Part shown: positions 3,760 to 22,066 of the stretch, piece after piece
Layout of the letters: each line of letters starts with the position of its first letter
How positions within the stretch are numbered: the stretch's first letter is position 1
Source of the DNA: Convolutriloba macropyga
Lineage: Eukaryota
NCBI RefSeq assembly: GCF_964194025.1
Contig: NC_134482.1
Coordinates: 40,734,001 to 40,798,000 of the forward strand
Length of the DNA stretch: 64,000 nt
Direction: 5' to 3'
The notes under the pieces: generated by a model
Told to the model about the DNA's origin: nothing
Seen by the model: the letters and a program-made list of their open reading frames with translations, nothing else
The model's database searches: none
Made by a program: the position numbers and the translations under genes

Positions 3760-6570
3760 CTCACATAAATTCGGAGAAGCAAAAAAGCATAAATTACTAA
3801 ACACACCATAGGCATTATCAACCTCAGTTACACGTTTAAAACCGCGGCAGCCTCAGACATATAATTGCACTGCATGAGACAGCGAAACTTATCTTCGTTC
3901 AAATGTATGTTATTGTGTCCGAGTAGGTGTCGTCCTCTTTTTCAGAGAGTTTTTGCAGCCAGTTGCTTTATAGTTCGTGTTGCAGTGAGTTCTGCATCTC
4001 TCATGCAGAAAAACACGAATGGAACAAAACTACTTGCTATTTTATTTGTAAAAGCTTTCGCCTTCGAGCAGCGGAAGTGAATGGTCAATTTCGACGTCAC
4101 AGCGCACGTCATGCATTATCTTCGCAAACGTGTCTAATTTTGTTGTACCGCATGTGTGTACATCCCCCGTTTGCACAATGGAGGGCATGAGTTAGTGTGA
4201 ACTTTTCTCCAATAGGACAGTAGATAGGCGTACTTTTTATTCAAGATTGTACCGAAACACAAACCGTCGCGCACTTTGATTTTATCAACATATTACCGTA
4301 GCGTTTCAGTGTCAAGGCTGTGATCCAGTTCGAGTCACCTTTTTCTGATGGCAAGCCAGCAACGTAACGTTTGATTTCGGGTAGCTTGCGTGGAATATAG
4401 TTTTGCCAGCTTCCAACTTCCTAAGTCAAGCGTTGCAGCTGTCTTGCGTAATCCTATAGCGACCAGAGATACAGCATAGTCAATGTCGTATTCTGTTGGG
4501 CCCCTGAAGTTGATTTCGCCCTCCAGGGTTGGTAGCGAACACAAATGACGCGGGTCGTCTGTGAAGGGATAGTCACAGAACGACGGCAACAATATTTGAA
4601 CATTTTCCTTTTGGTCCAAGAAAACGTTCTGAGCGTTAATTGTGGCGTGCAAGGAAAGCAAGTTTTTGATGAACAGATCTAGTAAATCATGAGGAGTTTC
4701 GCAAAATTTTTGGGTTTTCGCACTTTTTCCAAATTTATAATGTTGACTGGAGGAAGTTGCTAAAAGATTCACGCGGCAGCCGTCTAAAAAAATCAGAATC
4801 AGTTCCTTTGGAAACTTCGTGGGTTCTAGACTTTCGAAAGGTCCGTTACAATCAATTGGCATTTTGTAGCATCCACTATGTCTCTAATATGCTTACCAGG
4901 ATCGGATAAACCCGTGAAGAAATTCAACAGGATTTTTCAAACCTCCTACAGCACTGCCATTGTCCGCATTACATTTTTGAGTTATGCTTGAGTTCCACGT
5001 GAGGTCAATCAAAGGGAGTATGGCTATACCCGTTCATTGCCATGGCAATAAGTTCTCCCTGGGTGGTGCCTTCTTGAGACTGCAGGCAACTCCGGGCCAT
5101 AAACAGGTCGGATGGGGCCGTGTACAAATTTGTGAGCAACACAGCTCAAAGCAGGGCAAACTTATCTGATATTCTCTATTTTCCAAGAGCTAATTTACCA
5201 TTGAGGCAATGGAATGCATTTCTGGCGTCTATTAGGAGTACTGTTTGGTTTTCAGCGGTCTGCATTAATATGGCAGACCGCATTGAATGTATGGCATATT
5301 CAATCCGCGCTTTTGGCCTAGACAGAAACGGCTATTGCCTCTGCAGGTCAATTTATGCACTTCATGATACACTTCAGTAATACGGCGGAAGACTTCTCCA
5401 ACGCCAATTGGTCTGAACCCAGGGTTTTTGCTCAGGGTTATGTGATGACAAACGCTGTATGCTGCCAAATGTTTAGAATTTTTTCGGTGGCTAATCTGAT
5501 GGCAATTTTAGATAACGTTGCAATTTTGACTGATTTCTCTTTGAAGCATGTCAAAGTTTGTCTCCGTTCGCTTGCGTCCAAAAAGGACGGACCGTGGATG
5601 CCATGGGTTTTCACTGAAGCTTTTATGATTGCCGTTGCCCCTATGTTTTCAATTATAGATGTGTGGCATGGAATGGAAAGCTCGGGGGTCATCAAAAAAG
5701 TTTAGATTGACTGGAGAGTGCTGTGGGAGTTTTTCATGGAGTAGTTCAAGTACAGTGTTTCCTCAGATTTTATACTGTGAGATGATCCCTGATGAACTCT
5801 CCTGTTAAACACATAATTGCGTTCAAAAATTTTCTTGTCTCCGCGAACAATTGTTTCGGCTCAACCTTCTTTTCGCTTGCATTTCTTCTACAAAGCTTGT
5901 TTTGCAGGGCTTTGCTTTCAAGAAAAAGTTGGTCAGGTTGACTTTCACACCACTGTTGAAGCCGCCTAGATAAAAAGTAATCGTCATTGACCCGTGGTTT
6001 AGTTTTCACGCATGGGAGAATCAAGTGTGGAAAAATCGCTGCGACCCTGATAAGGTACAAAATTTTTTCTTTTCTTGAAAGCAATTCAAAATTTTGACAA
6101 CACAATAGACAAATTTGAGCCCCACTTTGTTTTTGTTGAGCAAAATCTTCTTCGATGCTGGGACGAAACCGCAATCATCATTGGATAGGGTTTCGTCACC
6201 CGGTGAGGTGTTTGTCAGGTTTTTCAAAACGATCCACACCTGTGGCGTTCGAGAACAAAGAAACTTGTGTATGGGACTGTTCTTCTTGATTGTCGCTTGA
6301 GTTATGCGGAGATTGACATCTGGGACAACGGAATCCGGGAGGGTGGTCAAACAAGCGCTTTAGGCTGTTACAACGTACGTGAAGCCAACCGCCGTCATGA
6401 TGCTGCAGTAATCTGTCTGATCTATGAATACTTCATATGCAGGGCCAGACTCGCATTTAAGGACATTGCGGGAGGGATAGCTGGGAAATTTAGAAAGGAG
6501 CAAATGAATAGTTTAGGAAATTTAATATTCGTGCGAAAGACTGATTATCACATGAGAATTTGTGAGGTTG
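3760..6570 (-). mobile_element. Decayed CRE-clade non-LTR retrotransposon (RT + Zn knuckle + restriction-like endonuclease)
   Basis: Motifs in order: PHLIL...RRLQQW (5770-6174); GFRPIGVGEVFRRI; LLIDARNAF; SQEGTTQGE.IAMAM; degenerate active site CNADNGSAVG for WYADD (~4950-4975); CPIGEKFTLTHALHCANGG..HMRYNKIR (~4135-4225); C-terminal KISFAVSCSAIICLR (~3855-3895). Many stops and frameshifts. Confidence 0.85.
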
Positions 6571-6571
6571 A

Positions 6572-6960
6572 TTAGAAAACAAAATAGTATTGAGGAACAA
6601 TAAAATTTGACGGGTCAAACTTGACATATATTAAATCAAACAAACAATGCCAGACAAAAGTGAACTCATTGGGGGAACTTCTATGATAACAGTTTTCAGC
6701 TTTCGAGAGGGGTCTAGCAAGAGAAGGTCTCTTAAAGTAGCTTCTCCGTATAACTAAACACAGGACTTCACAGCTCTGGGATACAAGTAATTTGTTCATG
6801 AGTTTCCCAGAACAAGTCTCTCAGACCACCTTGACATCATCTTGACGTGAAATAGTTCAGGTACAGTTTTAGTTCTGAAAGGGAATCTTTTTGCGATGTG
6901 GCCTTTAACACAAGGGCACTTTGTAGGCTAAAATCTATTTTATAAACTTCCTTATCGGTT
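6572..6960 (-). mobile_element. Highly decayed CR1-type ORF2 C-terminal fragment
   Basis: Weak resemblance to the post-RT region of the other LINEs here; no clean motif. Confidence 0.35.
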
Positions 6961-8109
6961 CTTCCAATTTATGTTGACATGTTTTTATTATTAAATTGCC
7001 TTCATTTGTCTCTATTTTGGAAATATCTCGTTGAAAAATAAGCATTATTATTAAGTTTTCACATTTTAAAAAGCAGAAACGAACACTGCTATTTTGTCTT
7101 TGCTTTTACCCATGAAATGAAACTGGTATTTTTGCGCCATGACCTTGAACATCACATCAGCACTAATCTATAAGACAAATTCATTTAAGATAATGTCATC
7201 AACGCAATAAGAGAATACATTCTCTTATCTCCGATCAAAAAATCTACGAAATTTCAGCCTAAAATAATACAAAAAAGCTTTCGACAATATAGTCCTTAAT
7301 GAATTTTGGATCGAAGACAAGTAAAATAAAAATTTCCGTCAAGTAATTTTAATACAGAGATAGCCAGAGTTGAGCTCTCGTAACAGTAAATCTTTTCAAA
7401 AGGACTCTTTTGACATAAAAGAGCTAAGCGACTATTTCCAGCTCTGTTAGAATTCAGTAGATTACAAAATTGGACTTTCTTTAACAGATCTGCCTTGAAG
7501 AGCAATCAGCAAGGGCACCACCGCGGTAAGTTATAAAACACTAAAAAAAAAAGTTAGGTCATAGGACCAAAGAACCCTGAAGACTGCACTCTTTTCAAAA
7601 AAGCCCCCCCCCCCCCCAATAAAATATTGAACCGATATTCTCTCCTAAGTTACCTGAGCACTGTTTTCAGGGTGAAATGCATATTAGTTTACTGTTAGTC
7701 TCAAATTACAGAACTAACCACCACGCCGATACACAGTTCCATCTGCTGTAGTGTACTGCACAATCTCAGGTCCATTGACCAATTGTTTAATTACATATAC
7801 TCCTCCGCATCTGGATTCAAATACCTCTTCGGACTGTAATTTCTCACAGCCCTCTCCAACCTCCATATATTGTCACTCAACAATGTCAAATCAAAAACCG
7901 GTCGTCAATTCATTTGACCTCAAAAAAATAACATAATCAAGTCAACTCAAGATATGATGTAAAGCAGAATTAATTTCAGCCGAAAATATTGCCTAAACAC
8001 TAAATATTGCTTATATGCGTTATGAAAAGGTAGTAGTAGTAATAATAATGATAATTTGAATTTACAACATGTTGAAGGGACTCTCGTCCCGAACTAAAAG
8101 TTTGAAATT

Positions 8110-10778
8110 TCAGCCAATACAGATTTCAATCAGAAGCAATTCTCCATGAACAAAGGTTGTTTTCGCTAAAGTTTTCAGTGAAGTATCGCCAGAATATTCG
8201 AAGTAACGATGGTTTCAGCCCAATAGGTCTTGTAATGTCAATAGATGGAAGAAATGATAATAGTCGAGTTGTGCGAGCAAAAAATTCGTCGTGGGATGAG
8301 TCAAATCGTGGTTTTCTGAAACTCGGAATTCTTCTATTTTCTCGTCTGGGTCCGTCCTTCAGAGATATGAAGTCCTGAGATCGTATGCTCCATTGCATAT
8401 CTTAGTCAAAGTGAGAACGTCCAACATTTGAAGGTAAAGAAGAATTGGGAGCACCTCCAGAAAGACTGAGCGCTCTTTGTAGTCACTGATGATTTGGCAG
8501 AATCCATTTCGTCGCGCGACGCTTGAGCAGTTCTAACTTCCTCATGTCGCCTATTGAAGCGTACCAACAGGGCGATGCGTAGCTGATGACAGCGACGACT
8601 GTGATATTGTGCAGATTGAGCTTCGCACTAACTCTCAGCTTGATGGAGACGTTCCTCTTAAGCAGATTGAGTGATCAGTATGCCTTGCCAAGCCTTCTGG
8701 ATGTGTTCTGACCATGACAGATTTGAAGAAACTATGAGGCCCAAGTCCCAGTGACTATTCACCGCGCCGATTGACTCGCTGTCGTCTGTCATGAGGAACA
8801 CACTCACGAACAAATCATTGAGAGCTTCGGTAAGATCGTTTATGTACACCAAGAAGAGCGGTCCTAATCTAGAGCCTTGGGGTACACCGCTGGTCACTTT
8901 CCTTTCTCATTACTTGGCGTCGTCGGTTTGAACAAATTGTCTTCCATCGTGTAGGTAGCTTTCGATTATTTGGAGCAATCGACCACTAACTCCTAGAGCT
9001 TGAAGTTTTGCTAAAAGAATGGAATGATCCACTTTGTCGAAGGCTTTCTTCAGTTCTAAGTAGACAGCATGAGTTTCAATCGAGCTGTCCTTGCTCTGCG
9101 CGATTTTGTTCAGAGAGACCAGAAGCTGGAGTACAGATGATCTGCCTCCTCGAAATCCGAACTGACACTCGAAGATTTAGGGTTAAACGATTTTGAGTAG
9201 TTTGTCGTAAAAGCATCTCTCAAAAACTTTGCCGACACAAGCTAACAAAGCAACTGGGCGACAGATAGCGACCTTGTCTTTGGCTCCTACCTTGTGCAGT
9301 GGCTTAATGCAAGAGATTTTCCAGCATGTAGGTAATTTGCTTGTCTCTTTTCTGAAGATGTAGGACACGGACTGGGCTAACCCTTCCGCGCAACCTCGCA
9401 GGAAACATGGGGAAATACCGTCAGGACCCGTTGCCTTAGTGTTGTCGAGCTCTCTTTGTATTACGCATACTTTCTCAGAACTTGTGTCAAAGTCACCAAC
9501 TAGTGAATGTTGGAGGTTCTCAGTTTTGCAAGTGCCTCTTGGGTTGTACACTGAGATGATGGACTCATTGAACGCGTTGGCTTTTTCTAGCGCTGTTCTG
9601 GTTTTCTCGTCTGCTAATTTCATTACAAGCGGTAGAATAGGTGCCCCTTTGACTCGCTTCAGATGTTTGAAGGTTTTCTCTGTAGAACGTCTAGCAAAAA
9701 GTTTGTCTGGATATTCAGATAGATCCTCCTCAGACATGCGCTCCACATCAGTTTTCAGCTGAGCAACTTTGTGTTTCTGATTTTCAGTTATTATGCCTTT
9801 TTCAGCTCGGTTTTCTGCGGTTTTGAGCCACCTGATGACGTTGGAAGGGGTTGGCCTAATCAGTTGAGGCAGTGATGTTCGATGTGAATTTTTTCTATGA
9901 ACAAAGGTGTCCAGTTTGGGTTCTAACCATTCGTGCCAATGTTGAACCATCAGCGACGGGTTTGTCCAGTAGTATGGAATGCATGGATCTTCTGTCAGTG
10001 CTTTTAGGATACTCTCTTTGTCCATCTTCTTGAAGTTAAAGAGGCATCTGCGTGTCGTTCTGTGTGAGCCATTGGACATCAACGTGTGCATAAAGAGCGG
10101 TTCGTGATCTGATTTTGGGCTGTCATCCAAAATTGGTGACGAATATGTGATGACAGATACGATAAGTGATGGGCTATTTGATAAGCATACGTCAAGAATG
10201 CGATAATTTGTCTTGTTTGATTGAGTGAGATTTAAACCTAGAAAGAAATCAAAACACTCTTGCTCGTAATAGTTGATGCTCGACATTTCGTCCCAGTTGA
10301 CTGTTGATAAATTAATTTCCCCAGCAAGGATAATGGGAACCATAGGATGCACAGAAAAATGTGTGCTAAGAAGAGAACGAAAGAGGGTGGAGGGCCAGAG
10401 GTAATTTGAGTTGCGTGGAGGATTATAGACAAAAAGAATAATAAAAAAAATTTCACAGGTGATGTGAACCGTAGCGAAACAGAAGCCGCTGACAATCATG
10501 TTCACAGGGAATGTAACTTCTTCGAAGTAAATTGAAGAGCGAATTCCAATGAGGACTCCTCCATGTTGTCCAGGATCTCTTCCACTTCTAACTAAATAAT
10601 AGTCGGGTTATAAAAGTTACCCATCTTTAAAAATACAACTACTGTCAAGCCAGGGCTTGCGTAAACAAAGAATGTCAAATGTGTTCAGTGATATAAAATT
10701 TGCAAAGTACTCTCCTCTTCGGGTGTCCATGAGACTTCTCACGTTGTAGCTAAAAATTTGACAAGTTTTGTTCTCTAG
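8110..10778 (-). pseudogene. LINE ORF2 (APE + reverse transcriptase), several frameshifts and deletions
   Basis: YNVRSL, HGGVLIGI, VYNPP, LAGEINL, ILDVCL, SDHEP; KATGPDGI, CRPVALL, KAFD, TSGVPQGSRLGPL, DLGLIVSSNLSWSEHI; C-terminal NLCSWRI. Confidence 0.92.
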
Positions 10779-11695
10779 TCAACCTTTTGGAGTCTCTTCA
10801 GAGCTCAGGTTTTTCACTTCGACTCCGTCAACAAACAGTTTTAGATTGTTTATATTGATTCTGCTCGGTTTGTTTGCGTTCCCCGTTTTCGTGAAGAATT
10901 CTCGTCGGTTTTTGAGGATGCGTCTCTCGAGATTCTGATCTTTTTCATTCAGGCTCGGGAAAAGAAGCACACTCCAGGCTTCAAAACTCCTTAAGGTTTT
11001 GGACTTCGCGAGAATCTTTCGCACATCCCAGATGCTTTTGAGGGTAACCAACATTGTTCGTGGTCGCGTGCAGTTGGGGTCGTGCTTTCCAATTCGGCGA
11101 ATGTTTTCCATTTTTGGGGATTCTTCCAGAAATTCCAGTTCAGCTTCGTCGTTATGCGATTCGTGTTTGATCGCAGGGTTATCAGGCCCGTGCTTGGTTG
11201 CTTCTCGACTGCCGTCAATTCTTAGTTGGTGCTGAATGAGCTCAGCTTCTGCTGATAGTTTCTCTTTCTTAGACTTTTCGTCGTGCTTCTTCAAGGGTGA
11301 TGTGACATCCTTTCTTGAGTTAGCTATTTCGGCTTTGACTTCGCGGATGTTTGCCTTTCATCATTCTTTTTTATCAGGGTCTGGGTAAGTCCTTCTTTGA
11401 CTTTAGACAAGGTGGCGAGGACGGCCTCGTTAATTTTTGCAGCGACAGATCTCTGCAACTGATCCTTCACGTCATTCAGTGTCTCGGAGATTGTATTTAA
11501 CTGCCTCTTCGTTTGGGTTTCTTTCTCACTCAAAACACTTCCTAGCAGCGACAGTGTCTCTCTCAATAGGTACTCGAGAGATGTTTTCTTTCGACGGCTT
11601 ATAAAGGTTTTCAGTTCGTCGTCATCAGCGGAAAGCAGTTTTTTAATCGTCGGGTAGTACTGAGGAATAGATGGGAGTCTCTTTTTTTCCGACAT
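10779..11695 (-). pseudogene. LINE ORF1 (coiled-coil + RRM/CTD-like), one frameshift near 11330
   Basis: ATG at 11695; heptad-rich QLNTISETLNDVKDQL; shifted frame AEIANSRKDVTSPLKKHD joins ORF 10779-11294, which contains IRRIGK...RPRTMLVTL. Confidence 0.82.
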
Positions 11696-11764
11696 TTTTG
11701 GGGTAAGCTGGCGATACCTACTGGAAAGTATCACGAGCTTTGGGCGGAGTCTAGGGGATAATGA

Positions 11765-11930
11765 CTGGAGCGAATGAACCGCTATTCCTACCTAAAAGAA
11801 TCACAGGAGCTATGCTGCAATTCCTACTTAAAGGTTTCACAGGAGCAAATGAGCTGCGATTCCTACCTAAAGGTATCACAGGAGCAAAAAACAGGAGATA
11901 TGTGGTTCATACTGAGAGGTTTCACAGGGA
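11765..11930. repeat. About 3.5 tandem copies of a 36-39-bp monomer between ORF0 and ORF1
   Basis: ggagcaaatgagctgcgattcctacctaaaggtatcaca-like unit repeated; partial copy at ~12024-12045. Confidence 0.85.
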
Positions 11931-12057
11931 ATTTTCTCAGAAGAAAGATAACTTAGAAGAAGACGTAAATTGATAGAAGGCGGTAAATAGATATACAGAA
12001 AGAATATAAAAGGGTTTCGAGCTTACTACCTAAAGGCGTCACAAGAAAGGAACTCAA

Positions 12058-12694
12058 TCAGTTGACCTCAGTCGTAGCTGAGGCCGAAGCTTGTTCCTCT
12101 TTGTACTTGATTGCACGTTTTCTTCTTGGGGTCAATCTCTTCTTCTTGTTCGGGATCTCGTCCAGACAGTCTTGACTTTGAGTGATTGTTTGAAGACTGC
12201 TGAGTTCCAGTTCTCGATTGATATGAAGTTTGCTGAGGTTGCTCACGTAGTCGTCGTTAGTGCGCTTTCTGTGAGAGAGGATATCTTTGATCACTTCGTT
12301 AACGAGGAGATCGGTAGTTTTGAGCTCTTTCAGGATGTCAGGGGTCAATTCAAGTCGAATGTATACAACTGCTTTGATACGATCTTCGAACTGGGTCCAT
12401 AAGTTGATCAACTCTTGGGGAGACAGGAATGAACCGTTGGCTGGGTGCTTAGAAACTGAATTGTTGATTAAGTCCGGCCACAATATCACGTCTCTCTTGC
12501 CTTTGAACTTCTCGGTCAACAAGTTATGGGCAAGCTTGTCTAAGTTTGGTTGTCGAAAGTTGAAACTGAGGCCGGGGATTGTTTGTGTAGGTGTCGTCGG
12601 GGCTGATGGGAATGACAATTTGTTCGAGCTTCCGTCGTTTATTAGTATTCGGGAAAATTGCGTGGTGCAATGAACTGGCTGCAAGTACTAACAT
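12058..12694 (-). pseudogene. Upstream ORF (ORF0), divergent SGNH/GDSL-hydrolase-like protein with basic C-terminus; probable single frameshift
   Basis: 208-codon open frame. An ATG at 12694 in another frame gives MLVLAASSLHHAI; then IPGLS, VILWPDLINNS and LSKLHI follow in the order of SGNH blocks I/II/III/V; C-terminal KKKRLTPRRKRAIKYK. Confidence 0.55.
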
Positions 12695-13399
12695 CTGATG
12701 TCAGAATTATGTCAGTGGGCCCCCACGGCCACTCACAATCAAATAATCTGAAAGCATTCTATTCAATAAGTTTATCACAACAATTAGTCTAGTAAAAAGA
12801 CTTAATTATTAGTAGTAAAAAACTTAGTTTAATTAGTATACAACAATTAGTAGTTGTAAAAGACTAATTCCTTTTAAAATAAGGTTTAAGAAAACACTCA
12901 TGTATGACTAATGTACGCCAAAATGTACACTAACACTTGATAAAATGTGAACACAAATAGTTCATATCACAATAAATTGATATTCTGGATTTCAGGTAAT
13001 TGACGAAGGAATTTTTCAGTGTTTTCATTTCCATTTCAAATAAAAAAATTTGAACCGGATGAGCTCGTTTGCAGCGCAACTTGCTCGGATGAACAATTCG
13101 TGCTCGGAGAGACCAGACCACCCACTATTCGGCCAGTATTGGTGAGGGGCTTTTCTCAATTTAGTTTGTATATCAACTAAGATAAACAGTTCTCAGTTTG
13201 ATACTAAAAAACTATTTTTGTGTTTTCGCTAATTCCGTCGCGGGGTTATTAGTTCCAGTCATCAAGTTCTAAAATACTGCCCACTTATTTCTACTGAGAT
13301 AACAATCACAAATGCCAAGTGCCGGCGTTTTTTTTCACAGTAAAATGGCTATGATAGCTTCAAAAATCTTCAGCCTCAAAATTCCAACGCAAAAAAGAG

Positions 13400-15390
13400 A
13401 ACACCTCTCATTATAGGTCATATTGAGTTGTGGATGTTGGAGTTTCGTATTAAGTAACTCCCAGTTGTCTTAACTTAAAAACTTATGATCGTGTTTCTGC
13501 ACAAATAACAAGATCAGAACAATTTCCACGTGCAGAGATTTTTTTCATCAAATATTTCACATGCAATCGGTTTTCTAATCCGTTGAAGTTGTTATGCTCA
13601 GGTATCTAGACATTCGATTTTTTAACCGTGTCGTTGGGTAGTAAAATTCCGTCTGCGCTCCTAGGATGTCGTTCGGGCGTTCTTCGAGTGTACATTCGGG
13701 TTAGAGCTATTCTTGTTGGTCCAATAGATTTAAAACGTAAAGCACATTGTTTAGCTACCGGAATATTGGAAGGGGTAGGATGTTTAAAAATCTTAAAGGA
13801 CTAACATATGACGCCACTTCGTAACCGGTTACCCACCTAAACGGCCTTGCTTTGAAGCGTTCAAGTATTTGGATGATGATCGTGTCGTTACCGCACATGA
13901 GAGCCGAAAAGCAAAAACAACTGTAAAAATAAGCCTTGTTGAGGACGGTTTACTGATTGTTCTTACATGGCACGCGTTTTCCTGAGCATGTAGGACATCT
14001 TGCTTTCTGTAGTCTCTATTGAATGTGATTTTCCCATGATGCGTCCCAAGTTATTTGATTTCCTGGTTCCTTTAGTCTCATTTTTAGAGCACTGATTCCA
14101 TTAAGATTAAATTGTGATTCCCTCGGAAAGCTAGTTTTGAAAATATGATCTTTTTGTCAAGTACTAGAGGACTCCTGGAATACCTTTACAAAGATGCAGA
14201 AGTGAAGTGGTTAAAGCAAAAAACCTTGTGAGGCTCAACTCGTGACATTTTGGAACGTTTTGAAACTGAAAATTTCAACAAGCACAGTTCCTTTTTGATT
14301 TCTCAAATAGTCTATAAACAGCTCGATCATACCTCCTACCACTCTTAAATTAGCTACTTTTTGGAATAGTTTGATTGAAGGACTTTATCAAAAGCCTTCG
14401 AGAAGTCGGTATAAAAGACATTGACTTCTGAATGCGGGTCTTAATCGAGAGCTTCATGCATGGTTTGGGGAAAAACTAGCATGTTGTGTTCGACAGATCC
14501 GCTCATCACAAAAAGTACTGACACTGAGTAAGATAAAAGCTGGAATATTTCTAGAAAATTTTTGAAACAATGTGCTTCCGATATCTGATGAAGACATTCG
14601 TCTGTAGTATTCGACATTTTGTCGATTGTTTTTTCTGTTTTATGGTGATTTTGCTTAAATTTTCATTTCATTAAATATTTCACGCGCTTGCTCTACGTTC
14701 TTAAAACGTTTTTTGAAAGACAAACAAATATATCTTGAAGTAGATTGAAAGAAAGCTGGAGGTATGGCACGTAGTCTACCAATATCCAGAGTGAACATTA
14801 TCTCACGAAGCTTTTGTTTCGAGACGCTGGTATTAGTCAATTTGTCTTTTTCAACCCTGAACGCCTAATTATTTTACTTAATTAACCTTTCGGACTGAAA
14901 ACTGAGTGAAAAATTCATTGAGCCCAATGACTTTTGCCGGCAGCTCCGACATTTTATTTCTGATGTCTTTTTGATGTATGGGATAAACTTTGAGCTTTCT
15001 TAAGGCTTTTGAGTTGTATGACGAATGCATTAGAGTTAGAGTATAGAGTTAGATAGTGTAATAATATTGTACTAGATTATTGCTTTCCAAATAAAAATAT
15101 AGCGTTGAGAAAAACAAAAACCAGGTGGCTAGAAAATTTTTGTTCTCTAAGAGTGCACAACTCCCGTCTCAACATAGTGAAAAGTTACATCGTAGGCAAA
15201 CAAGAAACGGTAATAACTGCGATCTTCACGTCCAGACCCCTCAAAGTCCATTGCTGAGTCAATTTTTCTGTAGGGACACCTAGTAAAACTCTTTGTTTGC
15301 TCTCTTTAGTCTTTTTTCAAAGTGCAATGATAGGTCTCAAGTTCTGTGAACTCGTATGTTTTTTATTCCCTCACTTCTTTGGAGCAATGT
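13400..15390 (-). mobile_element. Decayed CR1-type ORF2 (linker, RT, C-terminus); source-type sequence for the downstream arrays
   Basis: NEFFHSVFSPK-like linker (~14890-14925), FYTDFSKAFD-like (~14385-14420), C-terminal NLCTWKLF*SCYLCR (~13495-13545). Confidence 0.75.
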
Positions 15391-15995
15391 TCTGCTCATC
15401 ACAAAACAGCACTGACACTGAGTGAGATAAAATTTGGAATATTTGTAGAATATTTCGTCAAAGGATATTTGAAACAATCTGCTTCCGATATCTGATAAAG
15501 ACTGTGGTCTGTAATATTCGACATTTTGTCGATTGCTTTTTTGTATTATGGTAATATTGCATCAGTTGTCATTTCATCCAATATTTCACGCGTTTGCACT
15601 ACGTTTTCAAAATGTTTGTTGAAAGACAAACATGTATCTAGAAATAGATTTATAGAAAGCTGGAGGAATAGCAATTGGTCCACCAGATCTTGTAATATCC
15701 AGCTTGAAAATTATTTCGTGAATCTTTTGTTTCAAGTCGCTGATATTAATCAATTTGTGTTTTTGAATCCTGACAGCCAAATTATATTACTAAAATAACC
15801 TTTCGGACTTAAAACTGAGTGAAAAAATGATCGAGCACAAGAACTTTTGCCGGCAGCTCCAACATTTGATTTCTGATGGTTTTTTGATGTATGTGATAAA
15901 CTTTGAGCATTCTTAAGGCTTTTGAGTTGCATGACGAATGCATTCGATTTGGAGTATAGAGTTAGATAGTGTTTCAAAATTGTACTAGATTATTG

Positions 15996-16411
15996 ATTGG
16001 CATAAAGTTGATATTGACTGGCATAAATATCTCTCACTATCAGATATTGGAAACACAAGATCGCAGACAACTCGAAATTTCCAGTGCCTCAATTTTCGTT
16101 TAAAAAAATGCAAGTTCAATTTTAGGACGCCAGCCCGTAATCTTGCCTGTACATTTAACAATCTTTTCAAAAGCAAAATTTTGTTTATAAAGAAGACTGC
16201 AAAAAAATTTTTGGTTCTTTACTTTCTGTACTTTTACAATAAATATGACGAGAATACCTCATGTACATGGAGAATTGTTTGCTGATGTACCAAATGCAAA
16301 GAAGTGAAAAAACTCAATTTTTCCTAAACTACGAGCTTAGAACGCCTAGAACTGAGGGTCCCGTGACCCATGATATTTTGCTCTTAAGTCTTTCTTATTA
16401 TTATTTTTGTT

Positions 16412-16463
<52 letters not shown>

Positions 16464-16481
16464 TTATTATTATTATTACTT
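15996..16481 (+). mobile_element. 5'-truncated LINE 3' end with (TAT)n tail, nested in the array unit; TSD TTATTG
   Basis: Plus frame DIDWHKY...YDENTSCTWRIVC*CTKCKEVKK*; TTATTG at 15990-15995 and 16482-16487; empty sites at 15077 and 26449. Further copies at ~17400, ~18810, ~27365 and ~28370. Confidence 0.8.
16395..16478. repeat. (TAT)n microsatellite (LINE tail)
   Basis: Direct reading. Confidence 0.97.
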
Positions 16482-17799
16482 TTATTGCTCTCTTCATAAA
16501 AACATAGCCTTGACACACTCAGCAACCAGTTGGCCAGAAAAAATTTGTTCCTTAAAGGTGCACGAATCCGGTCTGAACTTAGTGAAACGTTACATCGTAG
16601 GCAAACAAGAAACGGTAATAACTGCGATCTGCACGTCCAGACCCCTCAAAGTCCATAGCTGAGTCAATTTTTCTGTAGGGACACCTAGTAAAACTCTTTG
16701 TTTGCTCTCTTTAGTTTTTTTTCAAAGTGCAATGATAGGTCTCAAGTTCTGTGAACTCGTATGTTTTTTATTCCCTCACTTCTTTGGAGCAATGTTCTGC
16801 TGATCACAAAACAGCACTGACACTGAGTGAGATAAAATTTGGAATATTTGTAGAATATTTCGTCAAAGGATATTTGAAACAATCTGCTTCCGATATCTGA
16901 TAAAGACTGTGGTCTGTAATATTCGACATTTTGTCGATTGCTTTTTTGTATTATGGTAATATTGCATCAGCTGTCATTTCATCCAATATTTCACGCGTTT
17001 GCACTACGTTTTCAAAATGTTTGTTGAAAGACAAACATGTATCTAGAAATAGATTTATAGAAAGCTGGAGGAATAGCAATTGGTCCACCAGATCTTGTAA
17101 TATCCAGCTTGAAAATTATTTCGTGAATCTTTTGTTTCAAGTCGCTGATATTAATCAATTTGTGTTTTTGAATCCTGACAGCCAAATTATATTACTAAAA
17201 TAACCTTTCGGACTTAAAACTGAGTGAAAAAATGATCGAGCACAAGAACTTTTGCCGGCAGCTCAAACATTTGATTTCTGATGGTTTTTTGATGTATGTG
17301 ATAAACTTTGAGCATTCTTAAGGCTTTTGAGTTGCATGACGAATGCATTCGATTTAGAGTATATAGTTAGATAGTGTTTCAAAATTGTACTAGATTATTG
17401 ATTGGCATAAAGTTGATATTGACTGGCATAAATATCTCTCACTATCAGATATTGGAAACACAAGATCGCAGACAACTCGAAATTTCCAGTGCCTCAATTT
17501 TCGTTTAAAAAAATGCAAGTTCAATTTTAGGACGCCAGCCCGTAATCTTGCCTGTACATTTAACAATCTTTTCAAAAGCAAAATTTTGTTTATAAAGAAG
17601 ACTGCAAAAAAATTTTTGGTTCTTTACTTTCTGTACTTTTACAATAAATATGACGAGAATACCTCATGTACATGGAGAATTGTTTGCTGATGTACCAAAT
17701 GCAAAGAAGTGAAAAAACTCAATTTTTCCTAAACTACGAGCTTAGAACTCCTAGAACTGAGGGTCCCGTGACCCATGATATTTTGCTCTTAAGTCTTTC

Positions 17800-17816
17800 T
17801 TATTATTATTTTTGTT

Positions 17817-17886
<70 letters not shown>
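17800..17886. repeat. (TAT)n microsatellite (LINE tail)
   Basis: Direct reading. Confidence 0.97.
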
Positions 17887-17887
<1 letters not shown>

Positions 17888-19210
17888 TTTTATTGCTCTC
17901 TCCATAAAAACATAGCCTTGACACACTCAGCAACCAGTTGGCCAGAAAAAATTTGTTCCTTAAAGGTGCACGAATCCCGTCTGAACTTAGTGAAACGTTA
18001 TATCGTAGGCAAACAAGAAACGGTAATAACTGCGATCTGCACGTCCAGACCCCTCAAAGTCCATAGCTGAGTCAATTTTTCTGTAGGGACACCTAGTAAA
18101 ACTCTTTGTTTGCTCTCTTTAGTTTTTTTTCAAAGTGCAATGATAGGTCTCAAGTTCTGTGAACTCGTATGTTTTTTATTCCCTCACTTCTTTGGAGCAA
18201 TGTTCTGCTGATCACAAAACAGCACTGACACTGAGTATGATAAAATTTGGAATATTTGTAGAATATTTCGTCAAAGGATATTTGAAACAATCTGCTTCCG
18301 ATATCTGATAAAGACTGTGGTCTGTAATATTCGACATTTTGTCGATTGTTTTTTTGTATTATGGTGATATTGCATCAGTTGTCATTTCATCCAATATTTC
18401 ACGCGTTTGCACTACGTTTTCAAAATGTTTGTTGAAAGACAAACATGTATCTAGAAAAAGATTTATAGAAAGCTGGAGGAATAGCACTTGGTCCACCAGA
18501 TCTTGTAATATCCAGCGTGAAAATTATTTCGTGAATCTTTTGTTTCAAGTCGCTGATATTAGTCAATTTGTGTTTTTGAATCCTGAGCGCCTAATTATAT
18601 TACTAAAATAACCTTTCGGACTTAAAACTGAGTGAAAAATTGATCGAGCAGAAGGACTTTTGCCGGTAGCTCCAACATTTGATTTCTGATGGTTTTTTGA
18701 TGTATGTGATAAATTTTGAGCATTCTTAAGGCTTTTGAGTTGCATGACGAATGCATTCGATTTAGAGTATATAGTTAGATAGTGTTTCAAAATTGTACTA
18801 GATTATTGATTGGCATAAAGTTGATATTGACTGGCATAAATATCTCTCACTATCAGATATTGGAAACACAAGATCGCAGACAACTCGAAATTTCCAGTGC
18901 CTCAATTTTCGTTTAAAAAAATGCAAGTTCAATTTTAGGACGCCAGCCCGTAATCTTGCCTGTACATTTAACAATCTTTTCAAAAGCAAAATTTTGTTTA
19001 TAAAGAAGACTGCAAAAAAAATTTTTGGTTCTTTACTTTCTGTACTTTTACAATAAATATGACTAGAATACCTCATGTACATGGAGAATTGTTTGCTGAT
19101 GTACCAAATGCAAAGAAGTGAAAAAACTCAATTTTTGCTAAACTACGAGCTTAGAACTCCTAGAACTGAGGGTCCCGTGACCCATAATATTTTGCTCTTA
19201 AGTCTTTCTT

Positions 19211-19497
19211 NNNNNNNNNNNNNNNNNNNNNNNNNNNNNNNNNNNNNNNNNNNNNNNNNNNNNNNNNNNNNNNNNNNNNNNNNNNNNNNNNNNNNNNNNN
19301 NNNNNNNNNNNNNNNNNNNNNNNNNNNNNNNNNNNNNNNNNNNNNNNNNNNNNNNNNNNNNNNNNNNNNNNNNNNNNNNNNNNNNNNNNNNNNNNNNNNN
19401 NNNNNNNNNNNNNNNNNNNNNNNNNNNNNNNNNNNNNNNNNNNNNNNNNNNNNNNNNNNNNNNNNNNNNNNNNNNNNNNNNNNNNNNNNNNNNNNNN
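19211..19497. other. Assembly gap (others at 44157-44355, 56844-57016, 61957-62176)
   Basis: Runs of N. Confidence 0.99.
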
Positions 19498-19955
19498 AAA
19501 AACATAGCCTTGACAAACTCAGCAACCAGTTGGCCAGAAAAAATTTGTTCCTTAAAGGTGCACGAATCCCGTCTGAACTTAGTGGACTGATACATCGTAG
19601 GCCGACAAGAAACTGTAGAAAATGCAACCTTCACGTCCAGCCCTCTCAAAGTCCATAGCAGGTTTAGTTTTTCTACAGGGACACATAGTAAAACACTTTG
19701 TTCGCTCTCTTTAGTCTTTTTTCTATTCTATGTGCAATGTTCAGTTTCAAGTTATGTGAACTCGTAAATCTGTTATTCCCTCACATCTTTGGAGCATTGG
19801 TTCCATCAAGATGAAAAAAAGATCTTCTCGGAAAATTAATTTTGCACATTTGTCCATCAGCAGTTCAGTCTTGATCCATTGGACCCAAGTTCTAATGGCA
19901 ACTAAGCCATTTTGTGTCTCGTGGAAACTTCCATTGAGAGTTAGAATTTATAGCT

Positions 19956-20565: not shown

Positions 20566-20574
20566 CTCCCACTC
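20566..20574 (-). promoter_or_regulatory. Polypurine tract GAGTGGGAG overlapping the pol stop codon
   Basis: Immediately abuts the 3' LTR. Confidence 0.85.
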
Positions 20575-22066
20575 AGACTTGAGCTGATTGCGTAGAGTCC
20601 GCTCCCATCAAAACTGCTCTGAATGATTCCATTTTCGAAACGGGTAAGGACTTTGTGAAGATGTCCGCTGCCATTTTGTCTGTAGGGACGTAATGAATTG
20701 AAATAGTCCCATCCTCAGTCTTGTCACGAATGAAGTGAAACTTTGTTTCGATGTGCTTGCTCCTTTTGTGCATGACTGGGTTTTGGCAGAGTCTGATACA
20801 ACTTTGGTTGTCCTCTCCAATTGCTATTGGACGTTTCTGTTGGATGCCAAAATCCTCTAGAAGTTGTTTCAGGTAGAGTGCTTCCTGAACTGCTGCTGCA
20901 ACGCCCTGATATTCTGCTTCTGATGAAGAAAGAGCAACTGTGGCCTGCTTCTTGACACCCCAGCTGAGTGCTGCGCCACGTCCGTTGAACTTGAAGTAAT
21001 AGCCCGTTGTTAATTTTCTGTCGTTCACGTCTCCAGACCAGTCTGCATCACTTTCCCCCACTAAATCATAACTAGCCTCTTTTGTGTAAGTAAGTTTTAA
21101 AACTTTTGAACCTTGAAGATATCGCAGAAGTCGTTTTCCGCACATCCAGTGTTGATTGGTAGGTGGATTCATGTGTCTGGACAGAATGTTGACTGTGAAC
21201 ATGATGTCTGGCCTCGTCTGTTTGGTCAGATACAGAAGTGATCCAACCAAGCTTCTGTAGATCCTCTGGTCCACTTCTTCGTCTCCGTTCTGTGCTGTCT
21301 GAAGTTTCAAATTCAAATCAGCTGGAGTTCTTGAGGGTTTGCATTGATCCATTTGAAACCACTCAAGCATTGTTTCTATGTAGCGTTCTTGGTCGACTGT
21401 GACTTTGCCCTCTTCTCGTCTGATTCTTAGACCCAGAAACCAGTGTAGTCTCCCTCTGTCTTCCATGTGAAAGGTTGGTTCTAGTGCCTTCTTGACATCA
21501 GAGACCACTGTCATACTTCTTGATGCTACTATGATGTCGTCAACACAGACCAAGATGAAGGTGTGATCCTCTGCCTCTGATCTTGCGAACAAGCAGTGAT
21601 CGTTCCTGCTTCTGGTGAACCCCTGTCTCAGTAGGAAGTTTGCCAGCTCTTTGTACCAGTTGTTAGCAGCCTGTTTCAAACCATAAACTGATTTATTTAG
21701 TCGACATGCTAACTTCTCCCCATCTGATCCGCGTTTTACAAACTCCTGTTGCTGTTCCAGATACACTTCTTCCTCGATTGGTGAGTGCAGGAAAGCAGTC
21801 TTGACATCAAATTGGTGCATCACATGGCCCTGCTTCGCTGATAGCTGAAGTAGAATCCTGAATGTCTCTGGCTTACAGGTAGGCGCAAAAGTCTCAAAGT
21901 AGTCCAGTCCTTCCACTTGTTTAAAGCCTTTCGCCACGTAGCGCGCTTTGTATTTGTCCACTTGACTACTGGGTCCCAATTTAACTTTGTAGACCCATTT
22001 GCCCGGTATGACGTCCCTGTCTGTGGGTGGTCTCACTAGGTTCCAAGTCTCGTTGTCTTGGAGTGC
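20573..22066 (-). pseudogene. pol: copia reverse transcriptase + RNase H (open 487-codon frame)
   Basis: KARYVAKGF, QFDVKTAFL, YGLKQA, LVCVDDII (Y to C in YVDD), SDADW, SSEAEY, EDNQ, RSKHI, ADIFTK. Confidence 0.97.

Follow-up and report, generated by a model that had tools for sequence, protein, structure and literature searches.

A three-ORF LINE in Convolutriloba macropyga whose first gene encodes a basic protein with a predicted SGNH fold and has relatives in other LINEs and in BEL/Pao elements

The stretch of DNA analyzed here, called the window, is a 64,000-nucleotide segment of the Convolutriloba macropyga genome (NCBI RefSeq assembly GCF_964194025.1, contig NC_134482.1, positions 40,734,001 to 40,798,000 of the forward strand), and window coordinates are counted from its first letter. 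Between ~12774 and ~8030 its minus strand carries what is best explained as a dead full-length copy of a tricistronic long interspersed nuclear element (LINE), in which a 5' untranslated region (UTR), an additional first open reading frame (ORF) called ORF0, an array of hairpins, ORF1 and ORF2 follow one another. ORF0 would encode a basic protein with an SGNH-hydrolase fold, a member of a large gene family borne by retroelements. We put the probability of this explanation, taken jointly, at roughly 80%. The parts of the copy are the following.

~12774..8030, minus strand: the whole LINE copy, ~4.75 kb, delimited by searching its own genome at the DNA level and by blastn comparison with six sister loci; the 5' end at ~12774 reads TAAACTTATTGAATAG... 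and the 3' end at ~8030 is an (ATT/ACT)n-type microsatellite tail
12695..12774, minus strand: 5' UTR of ~80 nt, common to the full-length copies when their 5' ends were compared side by side, including that of L057, a copy in another assembly
12694..12058, minus strand: ORF0, ~212 codons, with an ATG at 12694, one frameshift near 12590 and a TGA stop at 12060-12058
12013..12048, minus strand: first hairpin unit, ~10 nt past the ORF0 stop, decayed in the window and with a clean CUUGUGA...UCACAAG stem in sister copies
11767..11888, minus strand: 3.2 tandem copies of a 39-bp monomer (Tandem Repeats Finder), with an ~11-bp hairpin per unit (CUGUGAUaCCU / AGGaAUCGCAG)
11705..11740, minus strand: last hairpin unit, AGCUC GUGAUACUU ... 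AGGUAUCGC CAGCU, ending ~10 nt ahead of the ORF1 ATG
11324..11695, minus strand: first piece of ORF1, 123 codons, helical or coiled-coil-like, with an ATG at 11695 and a stop at 11326-11324
10779..11294, minus strand: second piece of ORF1, 171 codons, in a frame other than that of the first
9183..10505, minus strand: largest open piece of ORF2, 440 codons, covering an apurinic-type endonuclease and the beginning of the reverse transcriptase (RT); Pfam Exo_endo_phos_2, E = 3e-5
8718..9476, minus strand: RT core of ORF2, fragmented; 26-30% identity by tblastn to the RTs of four LINEs from other assemblies (L051, L053-L055)

The initial annotation had described a 208-codon frame upstream of ORF1 on the LINE's own strand, and this frame was found in the open-frame listing at 12684..12058 on the minus strand, with a TTG start. 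It had also proposed that the true N-terminus, MLVLAASSLHH, is reached through a frameshift, which proved to be correct: translation from an ATG at 12694, out of frame with the listed ORF, gives MLVLAASSLHHAIF..., in longer form MLVLAASSLHHAIFPNTNKRRKLEQIVIPISPDDTYT, and L057 carries ORF0 in a single frame as MLLLAASSLHHAIF...YTIPGLSFNF..., that is, MLLLAASSLHHAIF...EDIYTIPGLSFNFRQPN.... Because L057 reads straight through, the window ORF0 can be said to carry one frameshift near 12590, between ...DDTYT and IPGLS. Over its first ~35 residues, the ORF starting with TTG is an out-of-frame translation, and AlphaFold confidence there was low. All of the segments that had been singled out, IPGLS, VILWPDLINNS, LSKLHI and the basic tail, occur in the frame, where they coincide with the conserved blocks of a large family. 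Three conserved residues of that family, H66, R108 and G110 in the numbering of an intact homologue, are replaced in the window by Pro, Leu and Leu, respectively, losses that fit a dead copy.

To delimit the element, the whole genome was searched at the DNA level using the reverse complement of window 5000-13500 as the query. Homology to other genomic copies begins at window ~12763-12788 and stops at ~8025-8040, and five other loci of the same genome (C10:16.15 Mb, C13:27.28 Mb, C1:35.37 Mb, C6:40.43 Mb and C1:45.40 Mb) match the window copy at 77-85% identity in a single colinear block that runs from ORF0 through the spacer and ORF1 to ORF2. The 5' ends of these five loci coincide (TAAACNTATTGAATAGAATG...), and the seventh copy, L057, is 88% identical to the window copy and has an identical 5' end position; over all sister copies the identity to the window LINE is about 80-88%. 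Thus the window copy, the five own-genome copies and the one from another assembly all start ~80 nt upstream of the ORF0 ATG, and no full-length copy starting downstream of ORF0 was found among them. The remaining genomic matches are 5'-truncated with scattered breakpoints, as expected of a LINE. Because the common 5' end lies upstream of ORF0, homology runs unbroken through ORF2 and the other copies are randomly 5'-truncated, ORF0 belongs to the retrotransposed unit. Nor did any of the 11 contexts inspected, namely 3 copies of the window LINE family, 4 other LINEs and 4 BEL/Pao elements, show ORF0 apart from a retroelement, and no gypsy-like element was met among its carriers.

Divergence between copies is similar over the three genes, at 83-85% identity for ORF0 and 80-83% for ORF1/ORF2, with 74-79% for the spacer, which agrees with the initial judgement that ORF0 is preserved about as well as its neighbors. 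Differences in ORF0 within the LINE family are spread nearly evenly over the three codon positions (0.136, 0.131 and 0.175), indicating that the copies of this family are old and have been decaying neutrally. Two unusual arrangements of its pieces were seen elsewhere in the genome. At C6:40435999-40439872 (L045:1000-4873), a unit of the 5' UTR and ORF0, equivalent to window 12774-12114, is repeated four times in tandem with a period of ~978 bp, and this tandem 5' module, a macrosatellite-like amplification, precedes the ORF1/ORF2 of a full-length copy. At C7:54256519-54289184, four copies of a 5'-truncated piece of the LINE are spaced ~8.68 kb apart in what looks like a segmental tandem duplication.

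ORF0 has many intact relatives. Searching the six-frame translation of the genome with the window ORF0 as the query gave more than 150 scored matches among about 2,000-2,500 candidates, most of them uninterrupted frames of 207-231 codons with ~33% identity that start with MVFILAASSLHHA.... A word-based protein search with the window ORF0 found 2 relatives; the rest were found with an intact homologue and an exhaustive profile search of 1.84 billion representatives, which returned 944 clusters (defined at 50% identity) at E <= 0.001 and 624 at E <= 1e-10, almost every one a stand-alone protein ~190-230 residues long. Seventy members were aligned and numbered after the intact homologue, which has 212 residues. 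H151 is invariant (70/70), and A7, S8, G34, W65, H66, D67, N71, H76, Y105 and R108 are each present in at least 90% of the members, giving the consensus M-x-x-I-x-G-A-S-S-L ... P-G-L-S-x-N ... I-W-H-D-x-I-N-N-S ... H ... V-Y-C-x-R-x-G ... L-H-P. The family is basic, with a median isoelectric point (pI) of 10.5 and a median net charge of +12 over the last 45 residues. Scattered weak Pfam matches on ORF0 proteins (KaiA_N, TPR_ZFYVE26) were treated as noise. The age of the window copy and the lack of a Pfam match would suit a 208-codon frame that is open by chance in the 5' UTR of a LINE and is no gene at all. This explanation is refuted by the hundreds of intact homologues, the 944 clusters, the high-confidence fold described below and the invariant motif residues, and we give it next to no probability.

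Structure prediction indicates that ORF0 is a conserved protein of the SGNH fold. The intact homologue, modelled from the 70-sequence alignment, reached a predicted local distance difference test (pLDDT) score of 96.7 and a predicted template-modelling score (pTM) of 0.86. Its best Foldseek matches were GDSL-like lipases and platelet-activating factor (PAF) acetylhydrolase, with a probability of ~1.0, E ~2e-3 and a TM-score of ~0.5, and when the top 50 entries were realigned, 50/50 were SGNH/GDSL proteins with Z-scores of 7.8-10.7 over 137-164 aligned residues, spanning residues 1-173. The model of the window ORF0 itself had a pLDDT of 85, rising above 90 from residue ~40 on. Its exhaustive comparison with 48,161 chains, made independently of Foldseek, placed SGNH proteins in 44 of the top 45 rows with Z up to 7.4; the non-catalytic OSK domain of Oskar was among the matches (Z 5.5), and viral haemagglutinin-esterases stood lower in the list. 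Feature and shape searches of the ESM Atlas gave weak GDSL leads, again with TM ~0.5. By these structural matches, ORF0 is assigned to the three-layer alpha/beta/alpha fold with a five-stranded parallel sheet that defines SGNH proteins, and the SGNH-like fold suspected from the first inspection is therefore predicted with high confidence.

The most conserved residues of the family are candidates for the active-site positions of SGNH proteins. In the model, S8 (68/70) opens helix 1, directly behind strand 1; G34 (63/70) comes after strand 2, N70 (58/70) and N71 (66/70) after strand 3, and H151 in the loop ahead of the C-terminal helix. The order of Ser, Gly, Asn and His and their predicted secondary-structure context appear to fit blocks I, II, III and V of the SGNH proteins, the block III residue being D67, N70 or N71. 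The description of these blocks as non-canonical held for the lack of an Asp before the His, where the His-3 position is variable (K/A/S/Q/R) and no triad Asp (DxxH) is present. It needed correction in block I, where the family consensus is GASS, not GDS, and the AASS of the window LINE, which is also found in the commonest BEL/Pao family, is a subfamily state. Since the Ser, Gly, Asn and His positions are conserved, ORF0 is most likely still a Ser-His hydrolase, or at least appears to retain a functional pocket.

The same features can be read differently, with ORF0 as a non-catalytic pseudo-esterase whose sole role would be that of a scaffold for binding RNA or protein, as with Oskar's OSK domain, and whose binding site would be the hairpin. 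GASS in place of GDS, the missing Asp before the His, the very basic protein with its Arg/Lys-rich tail, the OSK domain among the structural matches (Z 5.5) and the hairpins that adjoin the gene in most elements would all suit such a scaffold. However, the expected nucleophile Ser (68/70) and the His (70/70), together with the Gly and Asn, are the most conserved positions of the family, whereas known non-catalytic SGNH proteins have lost these residues, and the esterase of the zebrafish element ZfL2-1 is basic and active alike. We therefore regard the pseudo-esterase as rather doubtful.

Beyond the window family, ORF0 was found as the first gene of four intact LINEs in other assemblies, listed below.

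L051: ORF0 of 207/247 aa; ORF1 of 396 aa with a PHD domain and CCHC knuckles; ORF2 with apurinic-type (APE) endonuclease and RT
L053: ORF0 of 200 aa; ORF1 of 321 aa, PHD/FYVE-like; ORF2 of 993 aa
L054: ORF0 of 199 aa; ORF1 of 399 aa with PHD and CCHC; ORF2 of 958 aa
L055: ORF0 of 197 aa; ORF1 of 350 aa of the coiled-coil type; ORF2 of 1,106 aa

The three-ORF LINE architecture is thus real, intact and recurrent, and the claim of a distinct arrangement with a separate ORF0 in addition to ORF1 stood in this respect. What did not stand is that ORF0 would be peculiar to the window LINE, because it is also carried by BEL/Pao elements. In the abundant BEL/Pao elements of this genome, ORF0 lies 0.7-1.2 kb downstream of the 5' long terminal repeat (LTR); a gag-pol frame with DUF1759, longer than 1,400 codons, follows it after 0.6-1.7 kb. 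LTR pairs of 435-536 bp enclosing ORF0 and the polyprotein are 97.2%, 97.7% and 99.8% identical, which shows these elements to be young, and the assignment to BEL/Pao follows from such LTR pairs and from the DUF1759 detected in L031. An element from another assembly (L052) has its ORF0 (P0124) ahead of a gene in which DUF1759 and Pao_retrotransp were detected, and an integrase (Integrase_H2C2, DUF5641) comes next. The BEL/Pao copy at C1:81547928-81558683 (L034+L050), with an intact ORF0 and two 435-bp LTRs that are 99.8% identical, was inserted very recently, judging from those LTRs. In several of these elements (L031:4531-5776, L032, L034), the 1.2-1.7-kb spacer between ORF0 and gag contains tandem repeats of ~110 bp, whose antisense strand is open over long frames of the MARDETGKRHGRGGNVGR type. 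The LTR elements thus resemble the LINE in that an array of repeats separates ORF0 from the gene that follows.

Full-length identity among the ORF0s of the four LINEs is 38-47%, whereas the RTs of these LINEs share 25-31% identity over the core only, save for the related pair L051/L054, and their ORF1 types differ. Because the ORF0s are closer to one another than the RTs, the ORF1 types differ and BEL/Pao carriers exist, comparison of these sequences favors the exchange of ORF0 between retroelements, as a module, over its co-inheritance with the polymerase. A different history would be a one-off chimera, in which the 5' gene of a BEL/Pao element was joined once to a LINE master copy, by template switching or insertion, and has since been a passenger without a role. 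In a quick, poorly resolved tree of the 70 rows, the window ORF0 does fall on the side of all BEL/Pao-linked proteins, with which it has the AASS variant in common, and all copies of its LINE family are dead with little codon-position bias. On the other hand, at least four other, mutually distant LINE lineages have an intact ORF0 in the same position, so that the arrangement recurs and is maintained; the window family was amplified to at least six full-length copies that keep ORF0; and ORF0 differs slightly less between these copies than ORF1/ORF2 do, its changes being mildly enriched at third positions. The placement in the tree, moreover, rests on a long branch, and an approximately unbiased (AU) test is compatible with the alternative. 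A single joining event of this kind is accordingly unlikely, and from the ORF0 tree we make no claim on the direction or number of transfers.

The spacer downstream of ORF0 was initially described as built of monomers, and the 39-bp unit (3.2 copies at 11767-11888) is indeed a run of tandem hairpins, which numbers 3-13 units in sister copies. The last unit is a perfect hairpin with a fold z-score of -3.6 (0/200 shuffles were as stable), and both L043 and L057 have kept it, though one pair is changed. Over 58 hairpin units, 80% of the cells were paired versus 32-52% when the partner was slid, and double-sided changes numbered 25 versus 14.7 +/- 2.6 in shuffles (0/500 reached 25), counts that include inherited changes, many of which are not independent. 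In most of the other elements examined, the ORF0 stop codon itself lies inside the 5' arm of a stable hairpin: the z-scores were -3.8 in the abundant BEL/Pao family, -4.6 and -6.3 in a second BEL/Pao family, -3.9 in L052 and -2.2 in L056. L051 and L053 have a common hairpin over their UAG with compensatory differences and weak z-scores individually, and the hairpin of L054 (z = -2.7) starts just past the UAA stop, not over it. No significant hairpin was found at the end of ORF0 in L055 or in a BEL/Pao deletion subfamily. In the BEL/Pao subfamily of L024, L027 and L034, the inner ~50 nt of the long stop-codon hairpin of L010-L026 are gone and ORF0 is intact. Stop-codon readthrough fusing ORF0 to ORF1 was considered and ruled out, as the two frames differ in L051 and L053 has an intervening in-frame stop.

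The recurrence of gene and hairpin together invites a stronger proposal, namely that ORF0 and its hairpin form a self-contained mobile cassette that was moved repeatedly among LINE clades and BEL/Pao elements. Its arginine-rich helix would bind the stop-codon hairpin and so tether the SGNH/lipid-binding domain in cis, as a class-independent adaptor between ribonucleoprotein (RNP) and membrane or as a counter-silencing factor. We consider this a possible, tentative extension of our preferred explanation, the tricistronic LINE with a basic SGNH-fold ORF0 from a retroelement-borne family.

Several observations weigh against that preferred explanation. No GDSL model was detected by the Pfam scan at E <= 0.1 in the window ORF0, the intact homologues or the 70 members, and the 70-member profile found no solved chain among PDB sequences at E <= 10 bar a spurious ribosomal protein. 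TM-scores of ORF0 to SGNH structures are only ~0.5. With an altered GDS motif and no Asp before the His, catalysis by ORF0 is unproven as judged from its sequence. All copies of the window LINE family are decayed, and it is the wider family, not the LINE family, that shows selection on ORF0. The ORF0 tree is poorly resolved, and the AU test is compatible with a single LINE-side clade that includes the window ORF0 (p = 0.34). Finally, the lack of a significant hairpin in L055 and the inherited changes among the covariation counts bear on the coupling of gene and hairpin.

The remainder of the window element is that of an APE-type LINE, with an ORF2 of endonuclease and RT, varied 5' truncation among the copies and a microsatellite 3' tail. 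Its ORF1 had been taken as complete, but the two pieces (11695..11324 and 11294..10779) are in different frames; the frame that holds the first spans 11734..11324 in the open-frame listing. A Pfam scan of the first piece gave weak helical matches only, the second gave weak language-model leads to Transposase_22 and Baculo_FP-type RNA-binding ORF1 domains (scores 0.82-0.88, to be read as leads only), and for the window ORF1 neither the Pfam scan nor the PDB sequence search gave a match. Near 8775-8781, between the RT region and its 3' part, the window copy is missing ~140 bp present in every other copy. With ORF1 split over two frames, ORF2 broken and conserved ORF0 residues lost, the copy is dead. 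No target-site duplication is recognizable at this old copy, and an Rfam search of the element matched no family.

Other repeats surround the LINE in the window. Just upstream of its 5' end, 12848-13114 is a different repeat of ~270 bp with 84-87% identical copies on C7, C6, C3 and C4017. At 15526-19082, near-identical sets of ORFs recur at a spacing of ~1,405 bp (15526, 16931 and 18339), suggesting a tandem macrosatellite, and these repeats are followed by a run of Ns at ~19200-19500. Further on, a 487-codon frame at 20573-22036 on the minus strand has Copia-type RT/RNase H features, including a YVDDIIV-like motif, and marks another retroelement.

SGNH modules have been described in retroelements before. 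The esterase of the Danio rerio ZfL2-1 ORF1p is a weakly active SGNH hydrolase with a pI of 10.8 that binds phospholipids and liposomes, not oligo(A), and such esterases were noted in CR1, RTEX and Penelope-like elements (Schneider et al. 2013, PMC3905857). They constitute ORF1 type IV, which stands in place of the other ORF1 types (Metcalfe & Casane 2014, PMC4120745). Like ORF0, the type IV esterase is an SGNH module upstream of the LINE polymerase with conserved Ser, Gly, Asn and His; both proteins are strongly basic (pI ~10.5 for ORF0 versus 10.8) with an arginine-rich stretch, and H66...N70 of ORF0 recalls the "transposon-specific" H191...N195 of ZfL2-1, a comparison made by the text of the paper and not by alignment. 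Unlike the type IV esterase, a domain of ORF1p that usually has a coiled coil or zinc finger N-terminal to it and forms part of the only ORF1 of its element, ORF0 is a separate cistron of ~210 residues with neither a coiled coil nor a zinc finger, and it precedes a second ORF1 (PHD with or without CCHC in L051, L053 and L054; coiled-coil in L055 and the window). It also differs in having GASS instead of GDS and no Asp at His-3, and in its presence in LTR elements. Compared with solved chains, the profile of the 70 ORF0 members gave no sequence match to a known transposon esterase.

A second parallel is the Vesta LTR elements of rotifers, in which a canonical GDSL ORF3 is located 3' of pol and is shared with Athena elements (Rodriguez et al. 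2017, PMC5408684). The GDSL ORF3 of Vesta and the Athena-Terminons resembles ORF0 in being a stand-alone SGNH-type ORF of LTR elements that is shared with another class of retroelement, and it provides a precedent for the modular exchange of accessory ORFs. The Vesta ORF3, however, has canonical catalytic residues, is detectable as GDSL by HHpred and belongs to Gypsy-like rotifer elements, whereas ORF0 is non-canonical, lies 5' of gag (BEL/Pao) or of ORF1 (LINEs) and has a hairpin after it. Among cellular and bacterial SGNH proteins, PAF-AH Ib alpha, TAP/TesA, the OatA C-terminal domain and the carbohydrate esterases CE2/CE3 have the three-layer fold predicted for ORF0 and apparently also its order and context of the four blocks (best Z 9-10.7), but identity to ORF0 is only 7-16%, TM is ~0.5, blocks I and V are altered in ORF0 and its C-terminal basic helix is extra. 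Primate L1 also has a gene called ORF0, a short antisense ORF in the 5' UTR without an enzyme fold; only the name, for an ORF upstream of ORF1, is held in common, and the two are unrelated. Neither PMC4120745 nor a 2026 survey of the CR1 group mentions a separate ORF0 or three-ORF LINEs, and a search of the full-text literature found no report of Pao-type elements with an esterase ahead of gag or of three-ORF esterase LINEs. What appears to be new here is a first cistron with a non-canonical, predicted SGNH fold that stands alongside an ordinary ORF1 or gag, is coupled to a hairpin and is common to LINEs and BEL/Pao elements.

As to function, ORF0, with its ~210 residues, divergent SGNH-hydrolase fold and arginine/lysine-rich C-terminal helix, may act as an accessory factor of the retroelement RNP. 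We favor an activity as a low-turnover Ser-His hydrolase or as a lipid- or membrane-binding module, similar to the esterase domain of ZfL2-1 ORF1p, and by analogy with that domain ORF0 may aid the association of the RNP with membranes or lipids; the lipid- or RNA-binding role suggested by the initial annotation is likewise what we infer. The basic C-terminal helix might bind the neighboring hairpin and thereby couple the protein to the RNA of its own element, or the hairpin might instead serve reinitiation or translation of the next cistron. Gene and hairpin together would be the unit exchanged between retroelement classes.

To our knowledge, no LINE ORF1 type is less well understood than the SGNH esterases, which have so far been seen as a replacement of the RNA-binding ORF1 (CR1/L2/RTEX) or as an extra 3' ORF (rotifer LTR elements). 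Where ORF0 stands beside a normal ORF1 or gag, the "esterase job" and the packaging of RNA fall to different proteins, so that each can be tested alone. The family is large and yet has no Pfam model, which makes it invisible to routine annotation of transposable elements. Because its carriers, LINEs and BEL/Pao elements, replicate by quite different mechanisms, ORF0 should serve a step common to both, and candidates for such a step are RNP assembly, membrane association, the translation of polycistronic RNA and the evasion of host silencing.

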